Shown here: positions 443-63,812 of the stretch, in pieces
Layout: each line of letters starts with the position of its first letter
Position numbering within the stretch: position 1 is the first letter of the stretch
Sequence record: ON568341.1
Strand: one strand, 5' to 3'
Length of the DNA stretch: 64,000 nt
Notes under the pieces: model-generated
Told to the model about the DNA's origin: nothing
Seen by the model: only the letters and a program-made list of their open reading frames with translations
Databases searched by the model: none
Made by a program: the position numbers and the translations under genes

Positions 443-571
<129 letters not shown>

Positions 572-575
572 AATA

Positions 576-652
576 CGGGGTATAGCACAATTGGATAGTG
601 CAAGAGAATTCTAATCTCTAGGTTGGGGGTTCAAGTCCCTCTACCTCGGCCA
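576..652 (+). tRNA. tRNA-Arg(UCU)
   Basis: Acceptor CGGGGTA/TACCTCG, arm AGAGA-ATTCTAA-TCTCT, TTCAAGT T-loop, CCA. Confidence 0.95.
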
Positions 653-675
653 ATTTTAATTAAAGGTTAAAAACC

Positions 676-1431
<756 letters not shown>

Positions 1432-1479
1432 ATTCAGTACCAAGGAGATTAATATGTTTAAAGATGAACGTCCAGATTT

Positions 1480-1520
<41 letters not shown>

Positions 1521-1526
1521 GAATTC

Positions 1527-1860
1527 CACAATCAGACGTATATGGTGTAAGCTACGTCGATGCTATCCAGAACAAGATCTCTGGTACTCTAGGAAGTGGT
1601 GAATGTTAACCTAGACGGGTTTGATAATTGGACGATAGGCAATTATTACTTGACTAGCAGGTTGAAACTAGAGGTGACAGTCCTTCACCAAACTGGAAAA
1701 CCGGATGGACTTTTATTTAAAAGGGTAAGGCGTGGAAATATGTTTACAGTAGTTACTTTTAGTAGCCTGTACGCCCCACGTTAAGGTAGTCGAAAGGCAA
1801 GTTAAAACGGGTAGTTATAAAGCTGAATTAACAGCGGCGTTTAACAGCGTCACAAAATAT
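1527..1860 (+). ncRNA. candidate approx 330-nt structured non-coding RNA
   Basis: Directly after promoter; chain of hairpins GACGTA/TACGTC, CCAGA/TCTGG, TCTAGG/CCTAGA, ATAATTG/CAATTAT, GGTGA/TCACC, GGCGT/ACGCC, GTC-GAAA-GGC, GCTG/CAGC. Confidence 0.6.
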
Positions 1861-1886
1861 ACGCATGTTGAATGAGAGGACTAGCC

Positions 1887-2141
1887 ATGATGTTTACTCA
1901 GGAACGATTAAACGAGATTGAGCAAGAACTCTTGAAGATTCAACATGAATTACAAGCCGTTGTTCGTCCTGTTAATTCAGATAATAACGTTTTATCAAAG
2001 TACGCACAGATCAAGCTGTTGGTCATGCACATAATACTCGTATATGGGTATAAGTACTTAAAGGTTATTTGGTCAGTTAGTTCAGTTGGTAGAACGCTTC
2101 ACTTCATAATGAAGAACTTACAGGTTCAAATCCAGAACTGA
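1887..2141 (+). CDS. hypothetical protein; 3' part overlaps a tRNA-like gene
   Basis: SD GAGGA, ATG 1887; last 70 nt are the tRNA-like element so the extent is doubtful. Confidence 0.4.
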   Translation: MMFTQERLNEIEQELLKIQHELQAVVRPVNSDNNVLSKYAQIKLLVMHIILVYGYKYLKVIWSVSSVGRTLHFIMKNLQVQIQN

Positions 2142-2144
2142 CCA
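2071..2144 (+). tRNA. atypical tRNA with 8-nt anticodon loop CUUCAUAA (Met/Ile-derived, possibly pseudogene)
   Basis: Perfect acceptor GGTCAGT/ACTGACC, D arm GTTC-AGTTGGTA-GAAC, CTTCA/TGAAG stem, TTCAAAT T-loop with two A-A mismatches in T stem; ends ACAA. Confidence 0.75.
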
Positions 2145-2151
2145 CAAAAAA

Positions 2152-3849
<1,698 letters not shown>

Positions 3850-3883
3850 AATATTCTCCTGAATTTGCTAAAAGTTATAATAA

Positions 3884-3889
3884 TATTTA
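3884..3889 (-). promoter_or_regulatory. T4-like late promoter core TAAATA
   Basis: Same position relative to SD as in other leftward late genes. Confidence 0.5.
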
Positions 3890-4041
3890 GTTACAATATT
3901 TATGAAATAGATTAAAAATTTGAAATGTGTTCAAAAATATTATAATAAATTTATAAAAAAAAATAAATGATTTTTTTTGAAACGGTTCAAAAAAATGTGG
4001 TATAATATATATGTTGTTCACGGAAAGATTAAGCGGGGATG

Positions 4042-4107
4042 CATGAGTTTGCTTAACGGAGATGATTGCAAATCCGATGTTAGTGGGTTAGAATCCCACA
4101 CTCACTG
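4042..4107 (+). pseudogene. decayed tRNA-Cys(GCA)-like remnant
   Basis: TTGCAAA loop followed by TCCG, T-arm GTGGG-TTAGAAT-CCCAC, partial acceptor TGAGT/ACTCA; D arm missing. Confidence 0.4.
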
Positions 4108-4108
4108 T

Positions 4109-4206
<98 letters not shown>

Positions 4207-4207
4207 C

Positions 4208-4257
<50 letters not shown>

Positions 4258-4330
4258 CTTTTTAATTTAAAAGTACTTTACTGTAGTGTTTAGTACCGTA
4301 TAATGTAAACAAAAGGATAAAATAAAACTC

Positions 4331-4855
<525 letters not shown>

Positions 4856-4878
4856 TTAAAAAAATCAGTACTTTATTA

Positions 4879-5263
<385 letters not shown>

Positions 5264-5280
5264 TTCACATGATATAGGGA

Positions 5281-5542
<262 letters not shown>

Positions 5543-5550
5543 GAATTTAA

Positions 5551-5952
5551 ATGAAAAAGAATGACTTGATCAAAATGCTTCAAGAAATTGACGGCAATCC
5601 AGAGATTGTTATTTGGAATGGATACGTCGATGATTATATGAACATCGAAAAAGGCTTGACTAAAATCACTCTAGTCAAAGAAACCGAACAGTTTCTTCAG
5701 AGTGCATTAGAGCACGAATGGTGTGAACGTAACAATACATTCGACATTCCAGAAGACCAACGAACCAAGATTGCAGAACGTGCTAAAGAACTGCATAAGA
5801 AACGCGAATACGATTTCCAGAACCCATATGTCACTGAAGACGAATTCAATCGCTGGTACGGTAAAAAGAAATTGACAAAGTATGTCCTTTCACCTAAACT
5901 ACGTGGTAAGACTTCACTTGGTGTATTCAACGCCGCAGACTTAAACTACTAG
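5551..5952 (+). CDS. hypothetical protein
   Basis: ORF with SD AGGA; N-terminus similar to next gene (MKxxDLIKxLQ). Confidence 0.85.
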   Translation: MKKNDLIKMLQEIDGNPEIVIWNGYVDDYMNIEKGLTKITLVKETEQFLQSALEHEWCERNNTFDIPEDQRTKIAERAKELHKKREYDFQNPYVTEDEFNRWYGKKKLTKYVLSPKLRGKTSLGVFNAADLNY

Positions 5953-5961
5953 CGGGTATTA

Positions 5962-6508
<547 letters not shown>

Positions 6509-6510
6509 TA

Positions 6511-6753
<243 letters not shown>

Positions 6754-6774
6754 TATCTTACTTTTAAACAAACT

Positions 6775-6848
6775 GCCTCAATAGCAAAATTGGTAATGCA
6801 CACGATTTGTAATCGTGAGATTTTTCCGTTCGAGTCGGAATTGGGGCA
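6775..6848 (+). tRNA. tRNA-Thr(UGU)
   Basis: GCCTCAA/TTGGGGC, CACGA-TTTGTAA-TCGTG, TTCCG-TTCGAGT-CGGAA; ends ACAA. Confidence 0.92.
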
Positions 6849-57548: not shown

Positions 57549-57661
57549 AAACTATTTTAAAAGTATTTGTAGAAAGTACTTGCACAGTACTGAAAAAAGC
57601 GTATAATGTTTTACATCGAGAGCGGGAACACTTCCCTACTCACTTTTAAGAGATTAAAACG

Positions 57662-58024
57662 ATGGCGACTCAAATCACTAAAATCATTGCTAACCTGGTT
57701 AACTTCCGCGACGATATGAAAGATCTTCCGGCGGCAACGGTTAAAACTCACATTGACGCATACCGCGAACTGATTAAAATGTTGCCGCTTAAGCGTGAAC
57801 AATACGCCGCTAAACTGATGCTTGATGCGATGATCCATAAGATGATCGCCAGTGATTTGACGATGGTTTATCAGTATATGGGCGAAAATTTCGCGGTGTA
57901 TAGTAAACCAGTACCAGGAATGGAAAGTACAGAAGTATTACACGGTTTAAATTTAAAACAAGATGCATGGGATAATATGCCTCGTTTCCTGGTATGGGCT
58001 GACAGTGGCAAAATTTACGAATAA
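57662..58024 (+). CDS. early hypothetical protein
   Basis: Own promoter and leader hairpin. Confidence 0.85.
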   Translation: MATQITKIIANLVNFRDDMKDLPAATVKTHIDAYRELIKMLPLKREQYAAKLMLDAMIHKMIASDLTMVYQYMGENFAVYSKPVPGMESTEVLHGLNLKQDAWDNMPRFLVWADSGKIYE

Positions 58025-58116
58025 GTTAAAAATTAGTTTGACAGTACTGAATAAAAGCGTATAATGTTTTACATCAGGTGGGGAATAGTTCCCCACTATA
58101 TAAGAGGATTAAAAAA

Positions 58117-58356
58117 ATGGCTAAATCAAAAATGTTCTTAGGTCACAAAAACAAAACTCATTGGAATGTAAGCCTGTGGATTAATAACGATGAGGGATTG
58201 TATCGGTTGGCCCTGGACTTTATTGCCGCCCATACTAATCGCAATGATGCGGCCCGTCATATGATGTTATTTTTAGAACAGACTGGACAAGATAAAACAC
58301 CGGACGGATTCAAATATAGCACTACTGCGATCCGTGCGGCGATGGTTGGAATGTAA
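58117..58356 (+). CDS. early hypothetical protein (WNVSLWINN family) copy 1
   Basis: SD GAGG; start ATG 58117; paralog of 60157. Confidence 0.85.
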   Translation: MAKSKMFLGHKNKTHWNVSLWINNDEGLYRLALDFIAAHTNRNDAARHMMLFLEQTGQDKTPDGFKYSTTAIRAAMVGM

Positions 58357-58442
58357 TAGAATTTATTTAAAGTACTATCATTTTTTTGCGATAGTACTTT
58401 ATAATAGTGTTTTATTCATACACCAACGATAAGGGCAACAGC

Positions 58443-58709
58443 ATGAATATTAAGTATTTTGCGACGCGTGAACAAGCTCGGATCGCCGCACGCCAGGACG
58501 GGGCAACGTTTAAAGATATGGGCGTACAATCGGAACGTGGTAAACGTTGGGCCATTGTAAAGCGTAGTACCGCCAGATCATTACAGTACTGGTTAGCGGC
58601 CTTAAAAAGTCCCGATAGTGTATCGCGTCGAGTGGTAGAAATAAAGCTCGACCGAAAGGGCAACCGCGTGACTGTGTACCGTACTAAAAAGATTGCAGTA
58701 CTTGAATAA
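58443..58709 (+). CDS. early basic hypothetical protein
   Basis: Start ATG 58443; Arg/Lys-rich. Confidence 0.75.
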   Translation: MNIKYFATREQARIAARQDGATFKDMGVQSERGKRWAIVKRSTARSLQYWLAALKSPDSVSRRVVEIKLDRKGNRVTVYRTKKIAVLE

Positions 58710-58796
58710 AAAGTACTTGCAAACTATGTTTAAAGGCGTATAATGTTTTACATCGAGAGCGGGAACTCTTCCCGCCTATAACCTGGAGTAATAAAA

Positions 58797-59027
58797 ATGA
58801 CTAATATGTATATGACTGAAGTTAAAACCGTAAAAGATACTACCACGAATAAAACTACTTACTTACAGCGGATCTGTGGTGTATGGCAACGTATCAGCAA
58901 ATCAAAGTACTTTAAATTAACATCATATGCAAACCGTTCGGATTCATTCAGTACTGAAATAAAAGGTAATAAAGTACACCAATACGGCACTTATTATTAT
59001 TACAGCCTGGACGCGATTGCAGTATAA
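58797..59027 (+). CDS. early hypothetical protein
   Basis: SD GGAG; own promoter. Confidence 0.8.
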   Translation: MTNMYMTEVKTVKDTTTNKTTYLQRICGVWQRISKSKYFKLTSYANRSDSFSTEIKGNKVHQYGTYYYYSLDAIAV

Positions 59028-59094
59028 TCATATTTTTTGAAAAATTTACAATTGCCGGTATTGACTTATTTTGTCAGTACTGGCATAATGTATT

Positions 59095-59140
59095 CATTGG
59101 CAGATAAGCCGTAGCCCATAGGGTGCGGGAGTGTATCTAT
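59095..59140 (+). ncRNA. two-hairpin sRNA family member D
   Basis: TTGACT-17-CATAAT; GGC-AGATAA-GCC..CCC-ATA-GGG-TGC. Confidence 0.6.
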
Positions 59141-59164
59141 AGAAAAATTAGTTTAGTATAGTTA

Positions 59165-59200
59165 CAATTGTGCACCCGGTGGGTTAGCTGTTGTCATGGG
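59165..59200 (-). ncRNA. two-hairpin sRNA family member E
   Basis: TTGACA-17-CATAAT; CCC-ACC-GGG-TGC, first hairpin weak. Confidence 0.5.
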
Positions 59201-59311
59201 GTATATTATGCCAGTACTTGATAATGCTGTCAATACTTTTTTTACTATTCAGTACTGAAAACTATTTTTAAAAAGTACTTGCTAACTATGTTTAAAGGCG
59301 TATAATGTTTT

Positions 59312-59386
59312 ACATCAGGACGGGGAACGAAATAAGTAACCCCGTTAAGTAGTCCAGGAGTAAGACATACGAAAAACTCCCCTGAT
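59312..59386 (+). ncRNA. stand-alone 75-nt structured RNA with 14-nt loop motif
   Basis: Promoter 59279, no ORF; ATCAGG/CCTGAT, ACGGGG/CCCCGT, GGAGT-AAGACATACGAAAA-ACTCC. Confidence 0.65.
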
Positions 59387-59454
59387 AAAATAGTTTGACA
59401 AATGTTTTTAAAAGCGTATAATACTTACATCAACTACTGAATGAGGGTTACAAA

Positions 59455-60066
59455 ATGAAAACTATCACTACTACTACTTTTGTTATGGCTTTTTCTGAAC
59501 TGAACGCAGAACAAAAAACGGCGGCTATCGAACTGGTTCGGGATCGTGAGCGTTCATGTGAGGATAATTTCTTTGCTGAGGGCGTTATCGAGTACTATAA
59601 AGAAACAGTACTACCAGAATACGGCATAGATGAAGCTGAATTGCAATACAGTGGTTTTTGGTCGCAAGGTGACGGTGCATCAATCAGTACTGACAGCGTG
59701 GACGCGGAGAAGTTTTTACGCAAGATTAAAGCGTTAACGAAATATCGTTCTATCCGTCACTTGTTGAATGAAGATGATTTGGCAATGAGTGTAGAACGTT
59801 CACACTCTCGCTACGCACACGAAAACACGGTAAGCGGTTGCGTTGATACTCGCTACACTGATTTAACTGTAAAACAAGCGGCACTTGCTGATGACCTGGA
59901 AAACTTACTGACTGATGCGATCCGTGAATTATCTCGTAAGTTGTACCGTGATTTAGAGAATGCATATGAGGATCAATTCACTACTGAAAACATTACTGCA
60001 CTGATTGAGGGTAACGAATATCAATTCAATGTTATTGATGGCGTAGTGGAATCAATCGAATATTAA
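59455..60066 (+). CDS. early acidic hypothetical protein
   Basis: SD GAGG; YSGFWSQGDGAS motif. Confidence 0.85.
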   Translation: MKTITTTTFVMAFSELNAEQKTAAIELVRDRERSCEDNFFAEGVIEYYKETVLPEYGIDEAELQYSGFWSQGDGASISTDSVDAEKFLRKIKALTKYRSIRHLLNEDDLAMSVERSHSRYAHENTVSGCVDTRYTDLTVKQAALADDLENLLTDAIRELSRKLYRDLENAYEDQFTTENITALIEGNEYQFNVIDGVVESIEY

Positions 60067-60156
60067 TTCAAAAAGTACTTGTAAACTAAGTTTAAAAGCG
60101 TATAATACTTTACATCAAGGCGGGGAGTGGTTCCCCGCTCAAACGAGGATTTAAAA

Positions 60157-60396
60157 ATGGCTAGTACTAAAACTTACAACGGACACAAAAACAAAACTCA
60201 TTGGAATGTAAGCCTTTGGATTAATAACGGTGAGTCATTGTATCGGCTTGCACAAAGTTGCATCGCACAAAGTAGAACTAAAGATATTGCTGCGGAATGT
60301 ATGTACCGCAGATTAAAAGCCAACGGTACTACTACAACACCGGACGGATTCAAATATAGCACTACTGCGATCCGTGCTGCAATGGTTGGAATGTAA
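60157..60396 (+). CDS. early hypothetical protein (WNVSLWINN family) copy 2
   Basis: Shares long identical DNA blocks at both ends with 58117. Confidence 0.85.
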   Translation: MASTKTYNGHKNKTHWNVSLWINNGESLYRLAQSCIAQSRTKDIAAECMYRRLKANGTTTTPDGFKYSTTAIRAAMVGM

Positions 60397-60453
60397 TATT
60401 CAGTACTGAGATAATGGCGGGTAATAGTTCCCGCCTTTACTGAGGGTTATCTA

Positions 60454-60714
60454 ATGAGTAAAGTAATTAGCTATACAGCACTAAGCAAGACATTATCTAT
60501 TAGCCAGTGCACCGATGGTTATTGGCTATTTGATGAAACGCGTGGCATGAATTTAGCCATGCGTGCAAAAACTGCTGAGGCGGCGTATCTTGAAGCATTG
60601 GAATACTACCAGGAACGTTTAAAGGAAGTAGAAGAAGATTATAAAAGCCTCAAAGCGAAAGTAGATCATTTCGTCGGTCAATTCATCGAGGAAGACGACG
60701 ACAAACAATATTGA
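60454..60714 (+). CDS. early hypothetical protein with coiled-coil tail
   Basis: SD GAGG. Confidence 0.85.
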   Translation: MSKVISYTALSKTLSISQCTDGYWLFDETRGMNLAMRAKTAEAAYLEALEYYQERLKEVEEDYKSLKAKVDHFVGQFIEEDDDKQY

Positions 60715-60800
60715 AAAAGTACTTGCAATTAGTTTTCAGTACTGTATAATGGTTTACATCAAAGGGAGAAATGGTTCTCCCTGGTAATGAGGAAAATAAA

Positions 60801-61022
60801 ATGGCTAATATCACTACTCTTTCCCAACTGGAAGCACTGGTGAAATCTATGCGGGAACATGCCGACAAAATCGGCGTACAAGATCCAGCCGTTTGCTTCT
60901 GCGACGAATTGAATGATGATACACTGGTAATAGCAGAAGTCCAGGACGTTTCTAACTATTCCTCGCGTTACACTGGCGGCGTAGCAAATAAAGGCGACTT
61001 CTGTTTATACCTTACAAAATAA
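60801..61022 (+). CDS. early hypothetical protein
   Basis: SD GAGG; start ATG 60801. Confidence 0.8.
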   Translation: MANITTLSQLEALVKSMREHADKIGVQDPAVCFCDELNDDTLVIAEVQDVSNYSSRYTGGVANKGDFCLYLTK

Positions 61023-61079
61023 CAACGCGGGGAGATAATAACTCCCCGTTACTTTTTCAGTACTGAATCATTTAATAGA

Positions 61080-61124
61080 CGGATCTCGGCACCCGGTGGG
61101 TTAGTGACTGTTTCGTCTTGATGT
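61080..61124 (-). ncRNA. two-hairpin sRNA family member F
   Basis: TTGACA-17-CATAAT; GAC-GAAACA-GTC..CCC-ACC-GGG-TGC. Confidence 0.6.
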
Positions 61125-61265
61125 AGTAATTATGCCAGTACTGGATGCACTTGTCAACAACTATTTTTCAAATACTTTTTATTAAAATACTTGCAATTAG
61201 TTTTTAAACGCGTATAATGTTTTGCATAGGGGGAGCGGTTCCCCTGGTAACTAAGGAATAAGAAA

Positions 61266-61502
61266 ATGCTCGAACAAATCAAATCAACGTCTGCGAATGT
61301 AACGGGAACTGTATCACACTTTACTAGTGATGAATCGCGTGGTGTTCCTTATTGTGCTGTACATGTAAACACTGATGGCAACTACTGGTTTACGGTTTAC
61401 GGATCATATTCATTTGGTCGGCCAGGACATCAAAAAATCCTGGATAAAGTACAGCCAACGGGTAAAAATATCACTGCTGAAATGTTTTATAAAAAATCAT
61501 AA
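61266..61502 (+). CDS. early hypothetical protein
   Basis: SD AAGGA; own promoter. Confidence 0.8.
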   Translation: MLEQIKSTSANVTGTVSHFTSDESRGVPYCAVHVNTDGNYWFTVYGSYSFGRPGHQKILDKVQPTGKNITAEMFYKKS

Positions 61503-61586
61503 AGTACTTGATAATAGTTTTTAGTACTGTATAATATTTTACATCGCAAGGGGGAGCGGTTCCCCCTGGTAACTAAGGATAATAAA

Positions 61587-61886
61587 ATGAAAATTGCAAT
61601 CATCGCCCTGGCTTTATCTGTTTCCTCTTTCGCTGTTAATGCGTCATTAGATGTAAGTAGTGAAAAATTCATTCAGTGCACTGTTGCAATGACCGATGAA
61701 AGTACTGGCGAGATTGTATTAAAGGATTTAGAGATCCAGCCGGAAGCATTTAAAAACGGCCCGTTCCATGAAGAAGACGAAAACGGTAGCACATCAATTT
61801 ATTATGATGCCAGTACTAAACGCGGTTCGGTCACTGTAATGGATACTGAGAAAGTAACGCATACCGGCGTTATTAATTGCCGTTGA
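61587..61886 (+). CDS. early exported two-Cys protein
   Basis: Signal peptide ending VNA. Confidence 0.85.
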   Translation: MKIAIIALALSVSSFAVNASLDVSSEKFIQCTVAMTDESTGEIVLKDLEIQPEAFKNGPFHEEDENGSTSIYYDASTKRGSVTVMDTEKVTHTGVINCR

Positions 61887-61907
61887 TAGATACTACGGGG
61901 TAACATC

Positions 61908-62138
61908 ATGACTAAGCGAATTGTTTTACTTAACGAAAGCAGTACTACACAACTACTTAACGCCGTGCATTATGATATTGAAACGAGCGTTAATCTTATC
62001 AGTACTGTAGTACTGTTGGACACTGGAAAGGTCGCCAATGATAAAGCGATTGCAGGTATATTAACGGATCTTGAGCCTGGTAGCAGTGCACCAATAACGT
62101 TAAATGGTAAAGTGTTTAATATTTTACTCACTGATTAA
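61908..62138 (+). CDS. early hypothetical protein
   Basis: SD GGGG. Confidence 0.75.
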   Translation: MTKRIVLLNESSTTQLLNAVHYDIETSVNLISTVVLLDTGKVANDKAIAGILTDLEPGSSAPITLNGKVFNILLTD

Positions 62139-62144
62139 GTACAT

Positions 62145-62166
62145 AGCCCACCTGGTGGGCTTTTTT
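62145..62166 (+). terminator. intrinsic terminator
   Basis: AGCCCACC-T-GGTGGGCT plus T-run. Confidence 0.85.
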
Positions 62167-62253
62167 GTTTTTGTAGTATCGTAGTACTGAGATACTTTGA
62201 AAATAGTTTTAAGAAAGTAGTTGACATTACCGCAGAAAAGCGTAGAATGTATT

Positions 62254-62328
62254 ACATCAAGACGGGGAGCACTAAGTAGACCGCCAGTAAGTCGAACGAA
62301 AAACTGGACACGTCGAGAAAACTTTGAT
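62254..62328 (+). promoter_or_regulatory. structured 5' leader sharing the 14-nt-loop motif with the 59312 RNA
   Basis: CCAGT-AAGTCGAACGAAAA-ACTGG. Confidence 0.65.
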
Positions 62329-62371
62329 ACACTAATAAACGTAAACTAAACTTTAATTGAGGATTTATAAA

Positions 62372-62854
62372 ATGGCTAATGTAAAATCATTTCTGAAAGC
62401 ACTGATTTCTAACGACACTGCTATTGCGGCTGAATTGCTGGCGGATCTGGATAGCGATACCATGAAAGCAGTACGCAACAATTTTAACATTGCGTACAGT
62501 GAAGCTAAAGAACTGCAAGCCAAAAAGATAGCAGAACTGGAAGAACAGAAAAAAGCCCGTGAAGAAGAACTACAAGCAACGATTGAAAGTATTCAGGCGG
62601 CGGTTGCAGGGTTGGATCTGGAAGTAGTTATTGAAATGGCACATAAAGCACTGGCAGTTAAGTACGGGGAAGATAAGCCAGTAACTAAACCTAAAAAATG
62701 GATTCAGGAACGCGTAACGGTTGTTCTTGATAATGGCGAGGAACATTTAATTCCCGTGCGTGGTAACTGCATTGCGGTAGTTCTGGATGCTATCAAAGAA
62801 AGCGGATTGACTCGCGAGGAATGGATCGAAGCTCACCGCAAAATTGAAGCATAA
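62372..62854 (+). CDS. H-NS-like nucleoid protein (divergent)
   Basis: N-terminal coiled coil, linker, C-terminal VLDNGEEHLIPVRGNCIAVVLDAIKESGLTREEW aligning by eye to H-NS [34 protein letters not shown]; start ATG 62372. Confidence 0.55.
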   Translation: MANVKSFLKALISNDTAIAAELLADLDSDTMKAVRNNFNIAYSEAKELQAKKIAELEEQKKAREEELQATIESIQAAVAGLDLEVVIEMAHKALAVKYGEDKPVTKPKKWIQERVTVVLDNGEEHLIPVRGNCIAVVLDAIKESGLTREEWIEAHRKIEA

Positions 62855-62875: not shown

Positions 62876-62902
62876 AGCCCACTTCTTATAGTGGGCTTTT
62901 TT
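62876..62902 (+). terminator. intrinsic terminator
   Basis: AGCCCACT..AGTGGGCT plus T-run. Confidence 0.85.
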
Positions 62903-63668: not shown

Positions 63669-63812
63669 ATGAAAACTTGTCAATGTGGTAAAAAATCTAT
63701 TACTGGTTTGAAACGGGGCGTTGCACTTTGCCAGTACCATTATAATTTACAAGTATGGGGTAAAGAATGGGCCGATCAAGTGGAAGCAATTAAGAAAGCA
63801 AAAAGTAAGTAA
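63669..63812 (+). CDS. early 47-aa putative zinc-binding protein
   Basis: MKTCQCG..LCQYH; SD GAGG. Confidence 0.7.
   Translation: MKTCQCGKKSITGLKRGVALCQYHYNLQVWGKEWADQVEAIKKAKSK

Follow-up and report, generated by a model that had tools for sequence, protein, structure and literature searches.

A probable family of pseudoknotted leader RNAs in the early promoter cassettes of an Asteriusvirus, T7 and other phages

Two copies of one RNA motif in a jumbo coliphage

The 64,000-nucleotide (nt) stretch of sequence record ON568341.1 analyzed here (the window) is that of an Asteriusvirus, a 121Q-like jumbo coliphage, and its early region carries two copies of a short motif: copy 1, upstream of a gene with no assigned function, and copy 2, upstream of a gene for a weakly H-NS-like protein of 160 amino acids (aa). 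On balance, we favor the reading that both copies are members of a widespread family of pseudoknotted RNAs which sits in early promoter cassettes of the sigma-70 type and serves as a host-directed structured leader RNA. The phages that carry this family infect Enterobacterales and Aeromonas, and the spacer between the A1 and A2 promoters of T7 is one of its members. The family is new within a known kind, the structured leader RNAs of phages, and is in neither Rfam 15 nor the searchable papers. An earlier note on the same DNA had read copy 1 as a stand-alone small RNA (sRNA) and copy 2 as an element controlling translation of the H-NS-like gene, with copy 1 as a titrating decoy in a small regulatory circuit. 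The likeness on which that proposal was built is real; the operator and decoy circuit itself is unlikely as a general function, a secondary use in jumbo phages being possible.

The two copies begin alike (ACATCA(G/A)GACGGGGA, at 59312 in copy 1 and 62254 in copy 2), share the string TAAGTAG, close with complementary strands (ATCAGG/CCTGAT and ATCAA/TTGAT, respectively) and present the same 14-nt loop, AAGnCnnACGAAAA, on a 5-bp stem (coordinates in Table 1). TAAGTA, the closing ATCA and TGAT and the loop on its stem all lie where the earlier note had placed them, and the compensatory flip of the stem that it described, from GGAGT/ACTCC in copy 1 to CCAGT/ACTGG in copy 2, is real and is one case of extensive covariation. 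The shared ACATCA start is likewise present but is not specific to the motif, being the generic start region of a promoter cassette that occurs 9 times. The likeness of the copies is more than chance, since the exact 20-nt core pattern AGTAAG-N4-ACGAAAAACT has only two sites in the window, which are the two copies; a repeat search pairs 59346-59378 with 62273-62305 at 79% identity; and a covariance model of the core scores copy 1 at 51.4 bits and copy 2 at 52.4 bits (E ~1e-13), the next-best score in the 64 kb being 7.7 bits.

Covarying stems and invariant unpaired bases

We define the family by an invariant junction, UAAGUAG-N-C, followed by a hairpin of 5-6 bp with the loop (A)UAAG-N-C-NN-ACGAAAAA. 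Both copies show junction, hairpin and loop, scoring 51-52 bits against the family model (R1), and both also have a closing helix, sense orientation and a sigma-70 promoter close upstream. In the defining stem, hairpin B, 93.6% of the cells scored are paired and both sides have changed in 4 of the 6 pairs, its versions including GGAGU/ACUCC, CCAGU/ACUGG, GCCUG/CAGGC, GCUUG/CAAGC and ACCUG/CAGGU. Its score was reached by none of 500 shuffles, slid controls pair at 31-39%, and RNAalifold recovers the hairpin independently.

The G-N-C at the end of the junction (UAAGUAG-N-C) pairs with a G-N-C in the loop of hairpin B, whose middle base is the first 'n' of the string AAGnC in the earlier note. 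This 3-bp pairing is found in 29 of 29 distinct sequences, with a central pair that is A-U in 23, U-A in 4 (copy 1, 121Q, LIMEzero and one K1F-like phage) and C-G in 2 (muut among them); within the window it is U-A in copy 1 (59353/59365) and A-U in copy 2 (62280/62292). Hairpin B and this pairing together form an H-type pseudoknot with a conserved A-rich third strand (A-C/U-G-A-A-A-A-A; ACGAAAAA).

The closing helix was scored with an anchored script in place of MAFFT column alignment, which was unusable across subfamilies. With fixed anchors, it is paired at 99.4% in the T7-likes, against 0-49% when slid. Its five versions there are GUCAA/UUGAC, GUCAUC/GAUGAC, GAUUAG/CUAAUC, GUCGGU/ACCGAC and GUCAC/GUGAC, and those elsewhere are AUCAGG/CCUGAU (copy 1), GACG/CGUC (copy 2), ACCGA/UCGGU, AACGA/UCGUU, CGGC/GCCG and GCGACG/CGUUGC, giving at least 10 complementary versions overall. 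An optional extra element takes the form of a plain hairpin (hairpin A) in copy 1 and in the Salmonella phage Munch, and of a 4-bp stem (CCGG/CCGG, CCAG/CUGG, CGGG/CCCG, CCGC/GCGG or CCAC/GUGG) in the T7-likes, where it is formed around the 5' closing strand and makes a second pseudoknot; it is absent in copy 2, in the Erwinia phage Hallingskeid and in the Klebsiella jumbo phage K64-1.

G-U pairs are frequent (11 of 29 at one position) and are compatible with sense RNA only; the element is specific to the transcribed strand. Around 20 unpaired bases are invariant, those of the loop and junction being kept across unrelated phages. The earlier note had proposed a protein-binding RNA element, and half of that proposal holds: this is a sense-strand structured RNA with conserved unpaired bases suited to a binding partner, while the H-NS-like protein fails as the general partner (see below).

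The motif recurs in promoter cassettes of many phages

A covariance search among relatives, the check that the earlier note had suggested, recovered the motif in many phages, with stems that covary. When model R1 is run over 1.1 Mb of phage DNA, members score 47.8-68.4 bits and all else at most 27.5 bits. BLAST with copy 1 returned 45 records, including the 145-kb Justusliebigvirus phages muut, outra and EmilieFrey, at 88-94% identity. With copy 2 it returned 51 records of the copy-2 type plus T7-like matches; the core is found in the T7-like Yersinia phage phiA1122 (nt 553-587) as well as in Salmonella phages Munch, 7t3 and SE_PL, Klebsiella phage fENko-Kae01 and Hallingskeid. The T7 version occurs in 488 records of T7-group phages (T7, T3, K1F, EcoDS1, Drulisvirus KpV71, Aeromonas phages and others), and a further subgroup of 11 records is made up of Pantoea phage LIMEzero with Pectobacterium and Aeromonas podoviruses. 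Jumbo phages of four groups carry the motif, namely Asteriusvirus, the Munch group, Hallingskeid and K64-1 (50.3 bits in the last). Of the three copies in 121Q, two belong to type 1 and one to type 2; the third copy would fall ~7 kb past the right end of the window.

The position of the motif is equally regular. In the annotated records of T3 and EcoDS1, it lies between the host-polymerase promoters A1 and A2, and in T3 and T7 the -35 hexamer of A2 forms its 3' end. Its start is 1-55 nt from the predicted start site of a strong promoter (annotated in T3 and EcoDS1); in T7, another hairpin comes first and the domain begins ~40 nt from the 5' end. A further promoter is almost always found downstream, at a gap that varies from overlap or 0 (T7) to ~45 nt (K64-1). 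The whole cassette of copy 1, with its first promoter (P1), the motif and a second promoter (P2), is kept in 121Q and muut, where the downstream genes have, by eye, unrelated N-terminal sequences. In T7, the spacer between A2 and A3 (~626-700) begins with the second of two GTCAACCGG repeats and ends with GGTTGACA, the -35 of A3; although missed by model R1, this spacer may be a degenerate duplicate of the closing-helix design.

At its gathering thresholds, Rfam 15 finds only 7 tRNAs in the whole window. With the cutoff relaxed to E<=10, neither the two copies nor the T7 leader rise above noise (15.1 bits against 60; 12.5 bits against 167). A pattern scan of 185,579 species genomes revealed no enterobacterial host copy, the matches being chance-type ones in unrelated taxa and one T7-like fragment, and BLAST of 5,426 complete E. 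coli genomes gave no match. In the literature, searched also for literal sequence strings, the T7 A1 template is printed with no function described for the motif; older T7 and T3 sequence papers lie outside the searchable text, where an earlier mention is possible.

Transcript context of the two copies

Copy 1 contains no open reading frame (ORF), as the earlier note had said, and has its own promoter. A 3' end of its own was not found: no terminator-like site lies on the + strand from 59386 to 61027, and P2 and then the gene at 59455-60066 follow. Copy 1 is thus, by sequence, the 5' part of a longer predicted P1 transcript of that gene and not the terminated, stand-alone sRNA that it had been taken for. 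The expression data available were assembled contigs of RNA runs, of patchy and perhaps DNA-derived coverage; copy 2 has no coverage, and the data are hence uninformative there. Hairpin B of copy 1, P2 and part of the gene are joined in two contigs (59372-59967 and 59356-59549), which are consistent with read-through, as weak evidence given possible DNA carry-over. A candidate sequestration of the Shine-Dalgarno sequence (SD) by copy 1, in which GUAACCCC pairs with GGGUUAC (59444-59450) in the long fold, was rejected, the pairing being lost in 121Q and muut, whose downstream genes and SDs differ.

Upstream of copy 2, a terminator-like hairpin closes the preceding unit, so copy 2 opens a new transcript. 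The earlier note had placed copy 2 ahead of the SD of the gene at 62372, and in this phage copy 2 is indeed the main 5' leader of that gene. The translational control deduced from this placement fares worse. The motif ends ~30 nt before the SD, with the domain ending at 62328, the SD at 62359-62363 and no more than a weak promoter-like site (62324-62352) in the interval, which argues against an autoregulatory operator overlapping the ribosome-binding site, and the copy-2 leader folds no better than shuffles (z 0.38), with no significant SD-occluding fold. The 123-nt leader of copy 2 (62250-62372) shows 100% identity across 27 phage records, whereas in many of those phages the protein reaches only ~81%, so the leader would be either more constrained than the gene or more recently exchanged, with a recombination boundary at the start codon.

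How the RNA might act

If the family is what we take it to be, the RNA would appear at the very onset of infection, forming the 5' part of transcripts that start at the first promoter of each cassette. Its conserved bases would be read by a host component (RNA polymerase, an RNA-binding protein or an RNase) or by a small ligand rather than by the H-NS-like protein, because the invariant unpaired bases are common to phages that share no protein. The mode that we tentatively prefer is action in cis on its own polymerase or transcript, through a put- or nut-like change in elongation or as a shield from Rho or from 5'-end-dependent decay. This mode is suggested by the strict promoter-proximal sense position, by the lack of a terminator and by an association with boxA in podoviruses: the distance from the motif to the boxA downstream is 16-31 nt in the LIMEzero group and 116-356 nt in most T7-likes. 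The boxA past the early promoters of T7 is a functional antitermination element (PMC3709561). Within the window, copy 2 would also serve as the 5' leader of the 160-aa gene, and copy 1 would provide the long-leader form of the 59455 mRNA.

Several observations weigh against a leader RNA of this kind. Within 600 nt downstream, no boxA (GCTCTTTAACAA-like) is found at either window copy, and none is found near the jumbo-phage or Justusliebigvirus copies. Transcripts from the second, downstream promoter lack the motif, which weakens a cis role on the downstream gene. Taken alone, copy 2 folds no better than shuffled sequence (z 0.12), its minimum free energy (MFE) fold retaining both inner helices, and, given the freedom of the search, a closing helix of 4-5 bp seen in just one jumbo-phage sequence is weak evidence by itself and could be due to chance. 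The T7 mutant clone T7_1t3 has lost the motif core together with A2, by recombination between its two GTCAACCGG repeats. Rebuilding T7 without A0-A3 and genes 0.3-0.7 leaves it viable, with an infectivity reported to be comparable to wild type, and in the best-optimised rebuilt T7 the latent period is delayed ~2-fold and the titre gain is ~2-fold lower (bioRxiv 10.1101/2021.08.23.457391). Since T7 is viable without the element, any role of the motif would be accessory. Finally, the function, the partner and the ends of the RNA are all things that we infer from its sequence and distribution.

Nearly as likely as action in cis, and doubtful in its own right, is a decoy or sponge acting in trans, for which the domain would be cut out of the primary transcript, in T7 by RNase III (at R0.3) and in jumbo phages by RNase E (in the AU-rich spacer). 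Early in infection it would then titrate a defence sensor or an RNA-binding factor of the host. The release of the T7 leader by RNase III is established and fits such a role, as do the loop and junction bases kept across unrelated phages, the three copies per Asteriusvirus genome (121Q), the independence of the cassette from the downstream gene and the dispensability of the element in laboratory T7, which is seen with other accessory early functions as well. On the other side, there is no terminator or mapped processing site past either window copy, and the two contigs that span copy 1 through P2 into the gene speak weakly against a released domain, DNA carry-over being possible.

A purely protective 5' structure, that is, an enlarged GC-rich 5' hairpin that shields the triphosphate end from RppH and RNase E, appears improbable. 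It would account for the closing helix lying 1-3 nt from the predicted start site in both window copies, and sister cassettes have simple GGGGA-N4-TCCCC hairpins at the same place. However, a simple hairpin would be enough for protection, which leaves the invariant unpaired bases and the covarying pseudoknot unexplained, and the T7 domain stands away from the 5' end with another hairpin in front of it.

Quite improbable, too, is a new riboswitch-like ligand sensor or small self-cleaving ribozyme. The compact H-type pseudoknot with its A-rich third strand, nested in a closing helix, the second pseudoknot (S1) that the T7-likes form around the closing strand, and the combination of variable stems with invariant unpaired bases would all suit one, whereas an expression platform, be it a terminator or SD sequestration, is not in evidence and no Rfam class matches even at E<=10. 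Two resemblances were considered and dropped: that to a hammerhead (T7 CUGAUAAG...CGAAA), as the window copies have no CUGA, no stem II and no Rfam match, and that of the T7 loop to the tmRNA tag region, in which the similar positions are variable or pseudoknot positions.

A host-directed leader RNA, the reading we favor, would have consequences beyond the window. Few phages have been studied as well as T7, whose A1 promoter region serves as a standard template for transcription; yet its A1-A2 spacer encodes a pseudoknotted RNA conserved with compensatory changes across hundreds of phages of unrelated families. The presence of the element in the very first transcripts of infection would point to an unrecognised interaction, at the level of RNA, with a conserved host component. 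A bolder version, which we put forward with considerable reserve, is that T7-like podoviruses, rV5-related myoviruses and several jumbo phages share a new class of phage structured RNA, which would be made within seconds of DNA entry. It would bind or sense a component conserved in enterobacteria, be it RNA polymerase, an RNase, a chaperone, a defence sensor or a signalling nucleotide, as a means of RNA-based host takeover or counter-defence; alternatively, it would be a new ribozyme or riboswitch fold. If true, an RNA-based element of takeover or counter-defence has been overlooked in the T7 A1-A2 spacer, and should its partner or chemistry prove new, the element would rank higher than a new family of a known kind. 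For annotation, the "tandem early promoters" of these phages are cassettes that carry an RNA element rather than mere repeated promoters.

The neighboring H-NS-like protein and remaining alternatives

The label "H-NS-like" that the earlier note gave to the 160-aa protein is reasonable but weak, and by predicted fold only. The AlphaFold model (predicted local distance difference test, pLDDT, 70.6) has a long N-terminal helix and a small C-terminal domain of a beta-hairpin and two helices. In a Foldseek search against the AlphaFold models of Swiss-Prot, H-NS or StpA made up 16 of the 18 best matches, with probabilities from 0.99 down to 0.84, and the other two were H-NS homologues of Buchnera and Haemophilus (0.47). 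Those 16 matches show 17-25% identity over ~144 collinear residues (best E 3.5e-3, at 25%), with template modeling (TM) scores of only 0.31-0.35. A Pfam search detected no H-NS domain or other match at E<=0.1, and the PDB holds no relative by sequence or by Foldseek. By eye, the protein has a loop RGN/SGN where H-NS presumably has QGR.

Homologues of this protein were found by tblastn in 51 records, from jumbo phages only (Asteriusvirus, Alcyoneusvirus and the Munch group), and Hallingskeid also has one. T7-like, LIMEzero-like and Justusliebigvirus phages carry the motif and have no homologue by tblastn, so the protein is not the general partner of the motif. This distribution, in which the motif is far wider than the protein, speaks against an autoregulatory operator, and with the cassette standing before unrelated genes it leaves little of the operator and decoy circuit of the earlier note. 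We consider it very improbable that the motif is an operator for translational autoregulation by the H-NS-like protein with copy 1 as a titrating decoy. Such an operator would agree with copy 2 being the 5' leader of the gene in this phage, with the copy-2-type motif upstream of the homologue gene in Asteriusvirus, the Munch group, Hallingskeid and K64-1, and with the binding of nucleic acids by H-NS and StpA, the best fold matches. Against it, in addition to the phages without a homologue, one or two strong consensus promoters separate the motif from the gene in three of these groups (Munch, Hallingskeid and K64-1), so much of the homologue mRNA there would lack the motif; the motif stands off the SD with no significant occluding fold; and copy 1 is not a discrete transcription unit.

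Downstream of the 160-aa gene, a 47-aa ORF (63669-63812) has a zinc-finger-like CxC...CxxH pattern, and a zinc-finger protein is annotated at the corresponding position in Munch, which suggests that the local gene order is conserved between these jumbo phages.

An element that works as DNA, be it an UP element or operator of the next promoter or a relic of horizontally transferred promoter DNA, is hardly credible: the A-tract of the T7 loop does sit at the would-be proximal UP subsite of A2, whose -35 hexamer is the 3' closing strand, but the spread of 0 to ~45 nt in the distance to the next promoter rules out an UP element, stems that covary rather than keep their sequence and strand-specific G-U pairs rule out a dimeric protein operator on DNA, and the core stays constant while the flanks diverge across subfamilies.

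Early region and promoter cassettes of the phage

Over a 3.7-kb stretch around both copies, the identity is 98% to Escherichia phage UE-S1 and 88-95% to other 350-kb Asteriusvirus phages (121Q, PBECO4). Small genes follow one another from 57.5 kb through the end of the window, and most of those at 57.5-62.3 kb are headed by one of 9 copies (57566-62257) of a ~50-nt sigma-70 promoter cassette of the pattern AAAAAGTACTTG..TATAATnnnnTACATC, in outline AAAAAGTACTTG...TATAAT-N4-TACATC. After most of these promoters come a GC-rich 5' hairpin of the GGGGA-N4-TCCCC type and a short gene; the early region is thus made of repeated promoter-hairpin-gene units. In several relatives, the corresponding region lies inside annotated direct terminal repeats.

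Some further features of the window were seen in passing. The 64 kb contain 53 copies of the palindrome CAGTACTG (e.g. at 59075-59082, 59250-59257, 60737-60744 and 61058-61065), where 0.79 would be expected. At the sites inspected it adjoins or falls inside sigma-70-like promoters, and the octamer is also present in the motif-adjacent promoters of Munch and K64-1; it may be a regulator site or a mark of a promoter class of these jumbo phages. A repeated intergenic element at 59205-59243 and 61129-61167, with GCACCCGGTGGGTTAG also at ~59174 and ~61092, has near-consensus minus-strand promoters (TTGACA-17-CATAAT with TG) directed away from the + strand genes, and in one DNA-like run a contig joins 59171 to 61089. 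Two paralogous DUF7249 genes (phrog_871; 58078-58356 and 60157-60396) lie 2040 nt apart, with DNA that is 83-95% identical over parts, and a cluster of seven tRNA genes (482-6848) occupies the left end of the window.

Table 1. Features of the two motif loci in the window; paired strands are joined by "with".
Feature	Coordinates	Strand	Remarks
Promoter of copy 1 (P1)	59279..59306	+	TTGCTA-16-TATAAT, 10/12 to consensus; member of 9-copy cassette
Copy 1 RNA domain	59314..59386	+	51.4 bits (covariance model), covariation; MFE fold -21 kcal/mol, z -2.56
Copy 1 closing helix	59314-59319 with 59381-59386	+	ATCAGG/CCTGAT
Copy 1 hairpin A	59320-59325 with 59340-59345	+	
Copy 1 junction	59346-59352	+	UAAGUAG
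Copy 1 pseudoknot	59352-59354 with 59364-59366	+	G-U-C with G-A-C
Copy 1 hairpin B	59357-59361 with 59376-59380	+	GGAGT/ACTCC
Copy 1 A-rich strand	59367-59375	+	
Promoter P2	59395..59422	+	TTGACA-16-TATAAT, perfect 12/12; 9 nt past copy 1
Gene after copy-1 cassette	59455..60066	+	203 aa, phrog_5162, function not assigned
Terminator-like hairpin with T run	62145..62161	+	Ends upstream unit
Promoter of copy 2	62221..62248	+	TTGACA-16-TAGAAT, 11/12; member of 9-copy cassette
Copy 2 RNA domain	62256..62328	+	52.4 bits (covariance model), covariation
Copy 2 outer helix	62256-62260 with 62324-62328	+	ATCAA/TTGAT
Copy 2 closing helix	62261-62264 with 62311-62314	+	GACG/CGTC
Copy 2 junction	62273-62279	+	UAAGUAG; hairpin A absent
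Copy 2 pseudoknot	62279-62281 with 62291-62293	+	G-A-C with G-U-C
Copy 2 hairpin B	62284-62288 with 62303-62307	+	CCAGT/ACTGG
Copy 2 A-rich strand	62294-62302	+	
Weak promoter-like site	62324..62352	+	TTGATA-17-TAAACT, 9/12; strong second promoter of relatives at corresponding position
SD of 160-aa gene	62359-62363	+	GAGGA
Gene for 160-aa protein	62372..62854	+	Weakly H-NS-like
Terminator-like hairpin past 160-aa gene	62876..62897	+	

Comparison with known systems

Autoregulatory leader pseudoknots are known for nucleic-acid-binding proteins, from T4 gene 32 and from the S4 site of the E. coli alpha operon, and in this phage the element likewise lies in the leader of a gene for a putative nucleic-acid-binding protein; it differs in having no tie to this gene family across phages and in standing off the ribosome-binding site. 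The protein itself weakly resembles H-NS and StpA in its fold matches, its long N-terminal helix and its small C-terminal domain, and differs from them in having no Pfam or PDB match. With small H-type pseudoknot riboswitches such as preQ1-I and SAM-II, the element has in common a short hairpin whose loop pairs with a flank, an A-rich third strand and invariant unpaired bases; in the element, however, it is the 5' flank that pairs with the loop, giving another strand order, and there is neither a match in Rfam nor an expression platform.

The antitermination sites of lambda (nut) and of rrn leaders, with boxA and a boxB hairpin, are also leader elements with a hairpin, and the proximity of boxA in the LIMEzero group and the position of the motif upstream of the functional boxA in the T7-likes extend this likeness. 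The window and jumbo-phage copies depart from it in having no boxA within 600 nt, and the loop of the element is 14-17 nt long and pseudoknotted, as against a GNRA-like pentaloop, with no N-like protein implied. The cis-acting antiterminator put RNAs of HK022, which are described as having two stem-loops and no pseudoknot, are followed by terminators to override, whereas what lies downstream of the element in the window is another promoter. Compared by position and orientation alone, they are nonetheless alike, each being a structured sense RNA of ~60-75 nt directly behind strong early promoters of the host polymerase, and a role that needs no phage protein, as in put, would suit the distribution of the motif.

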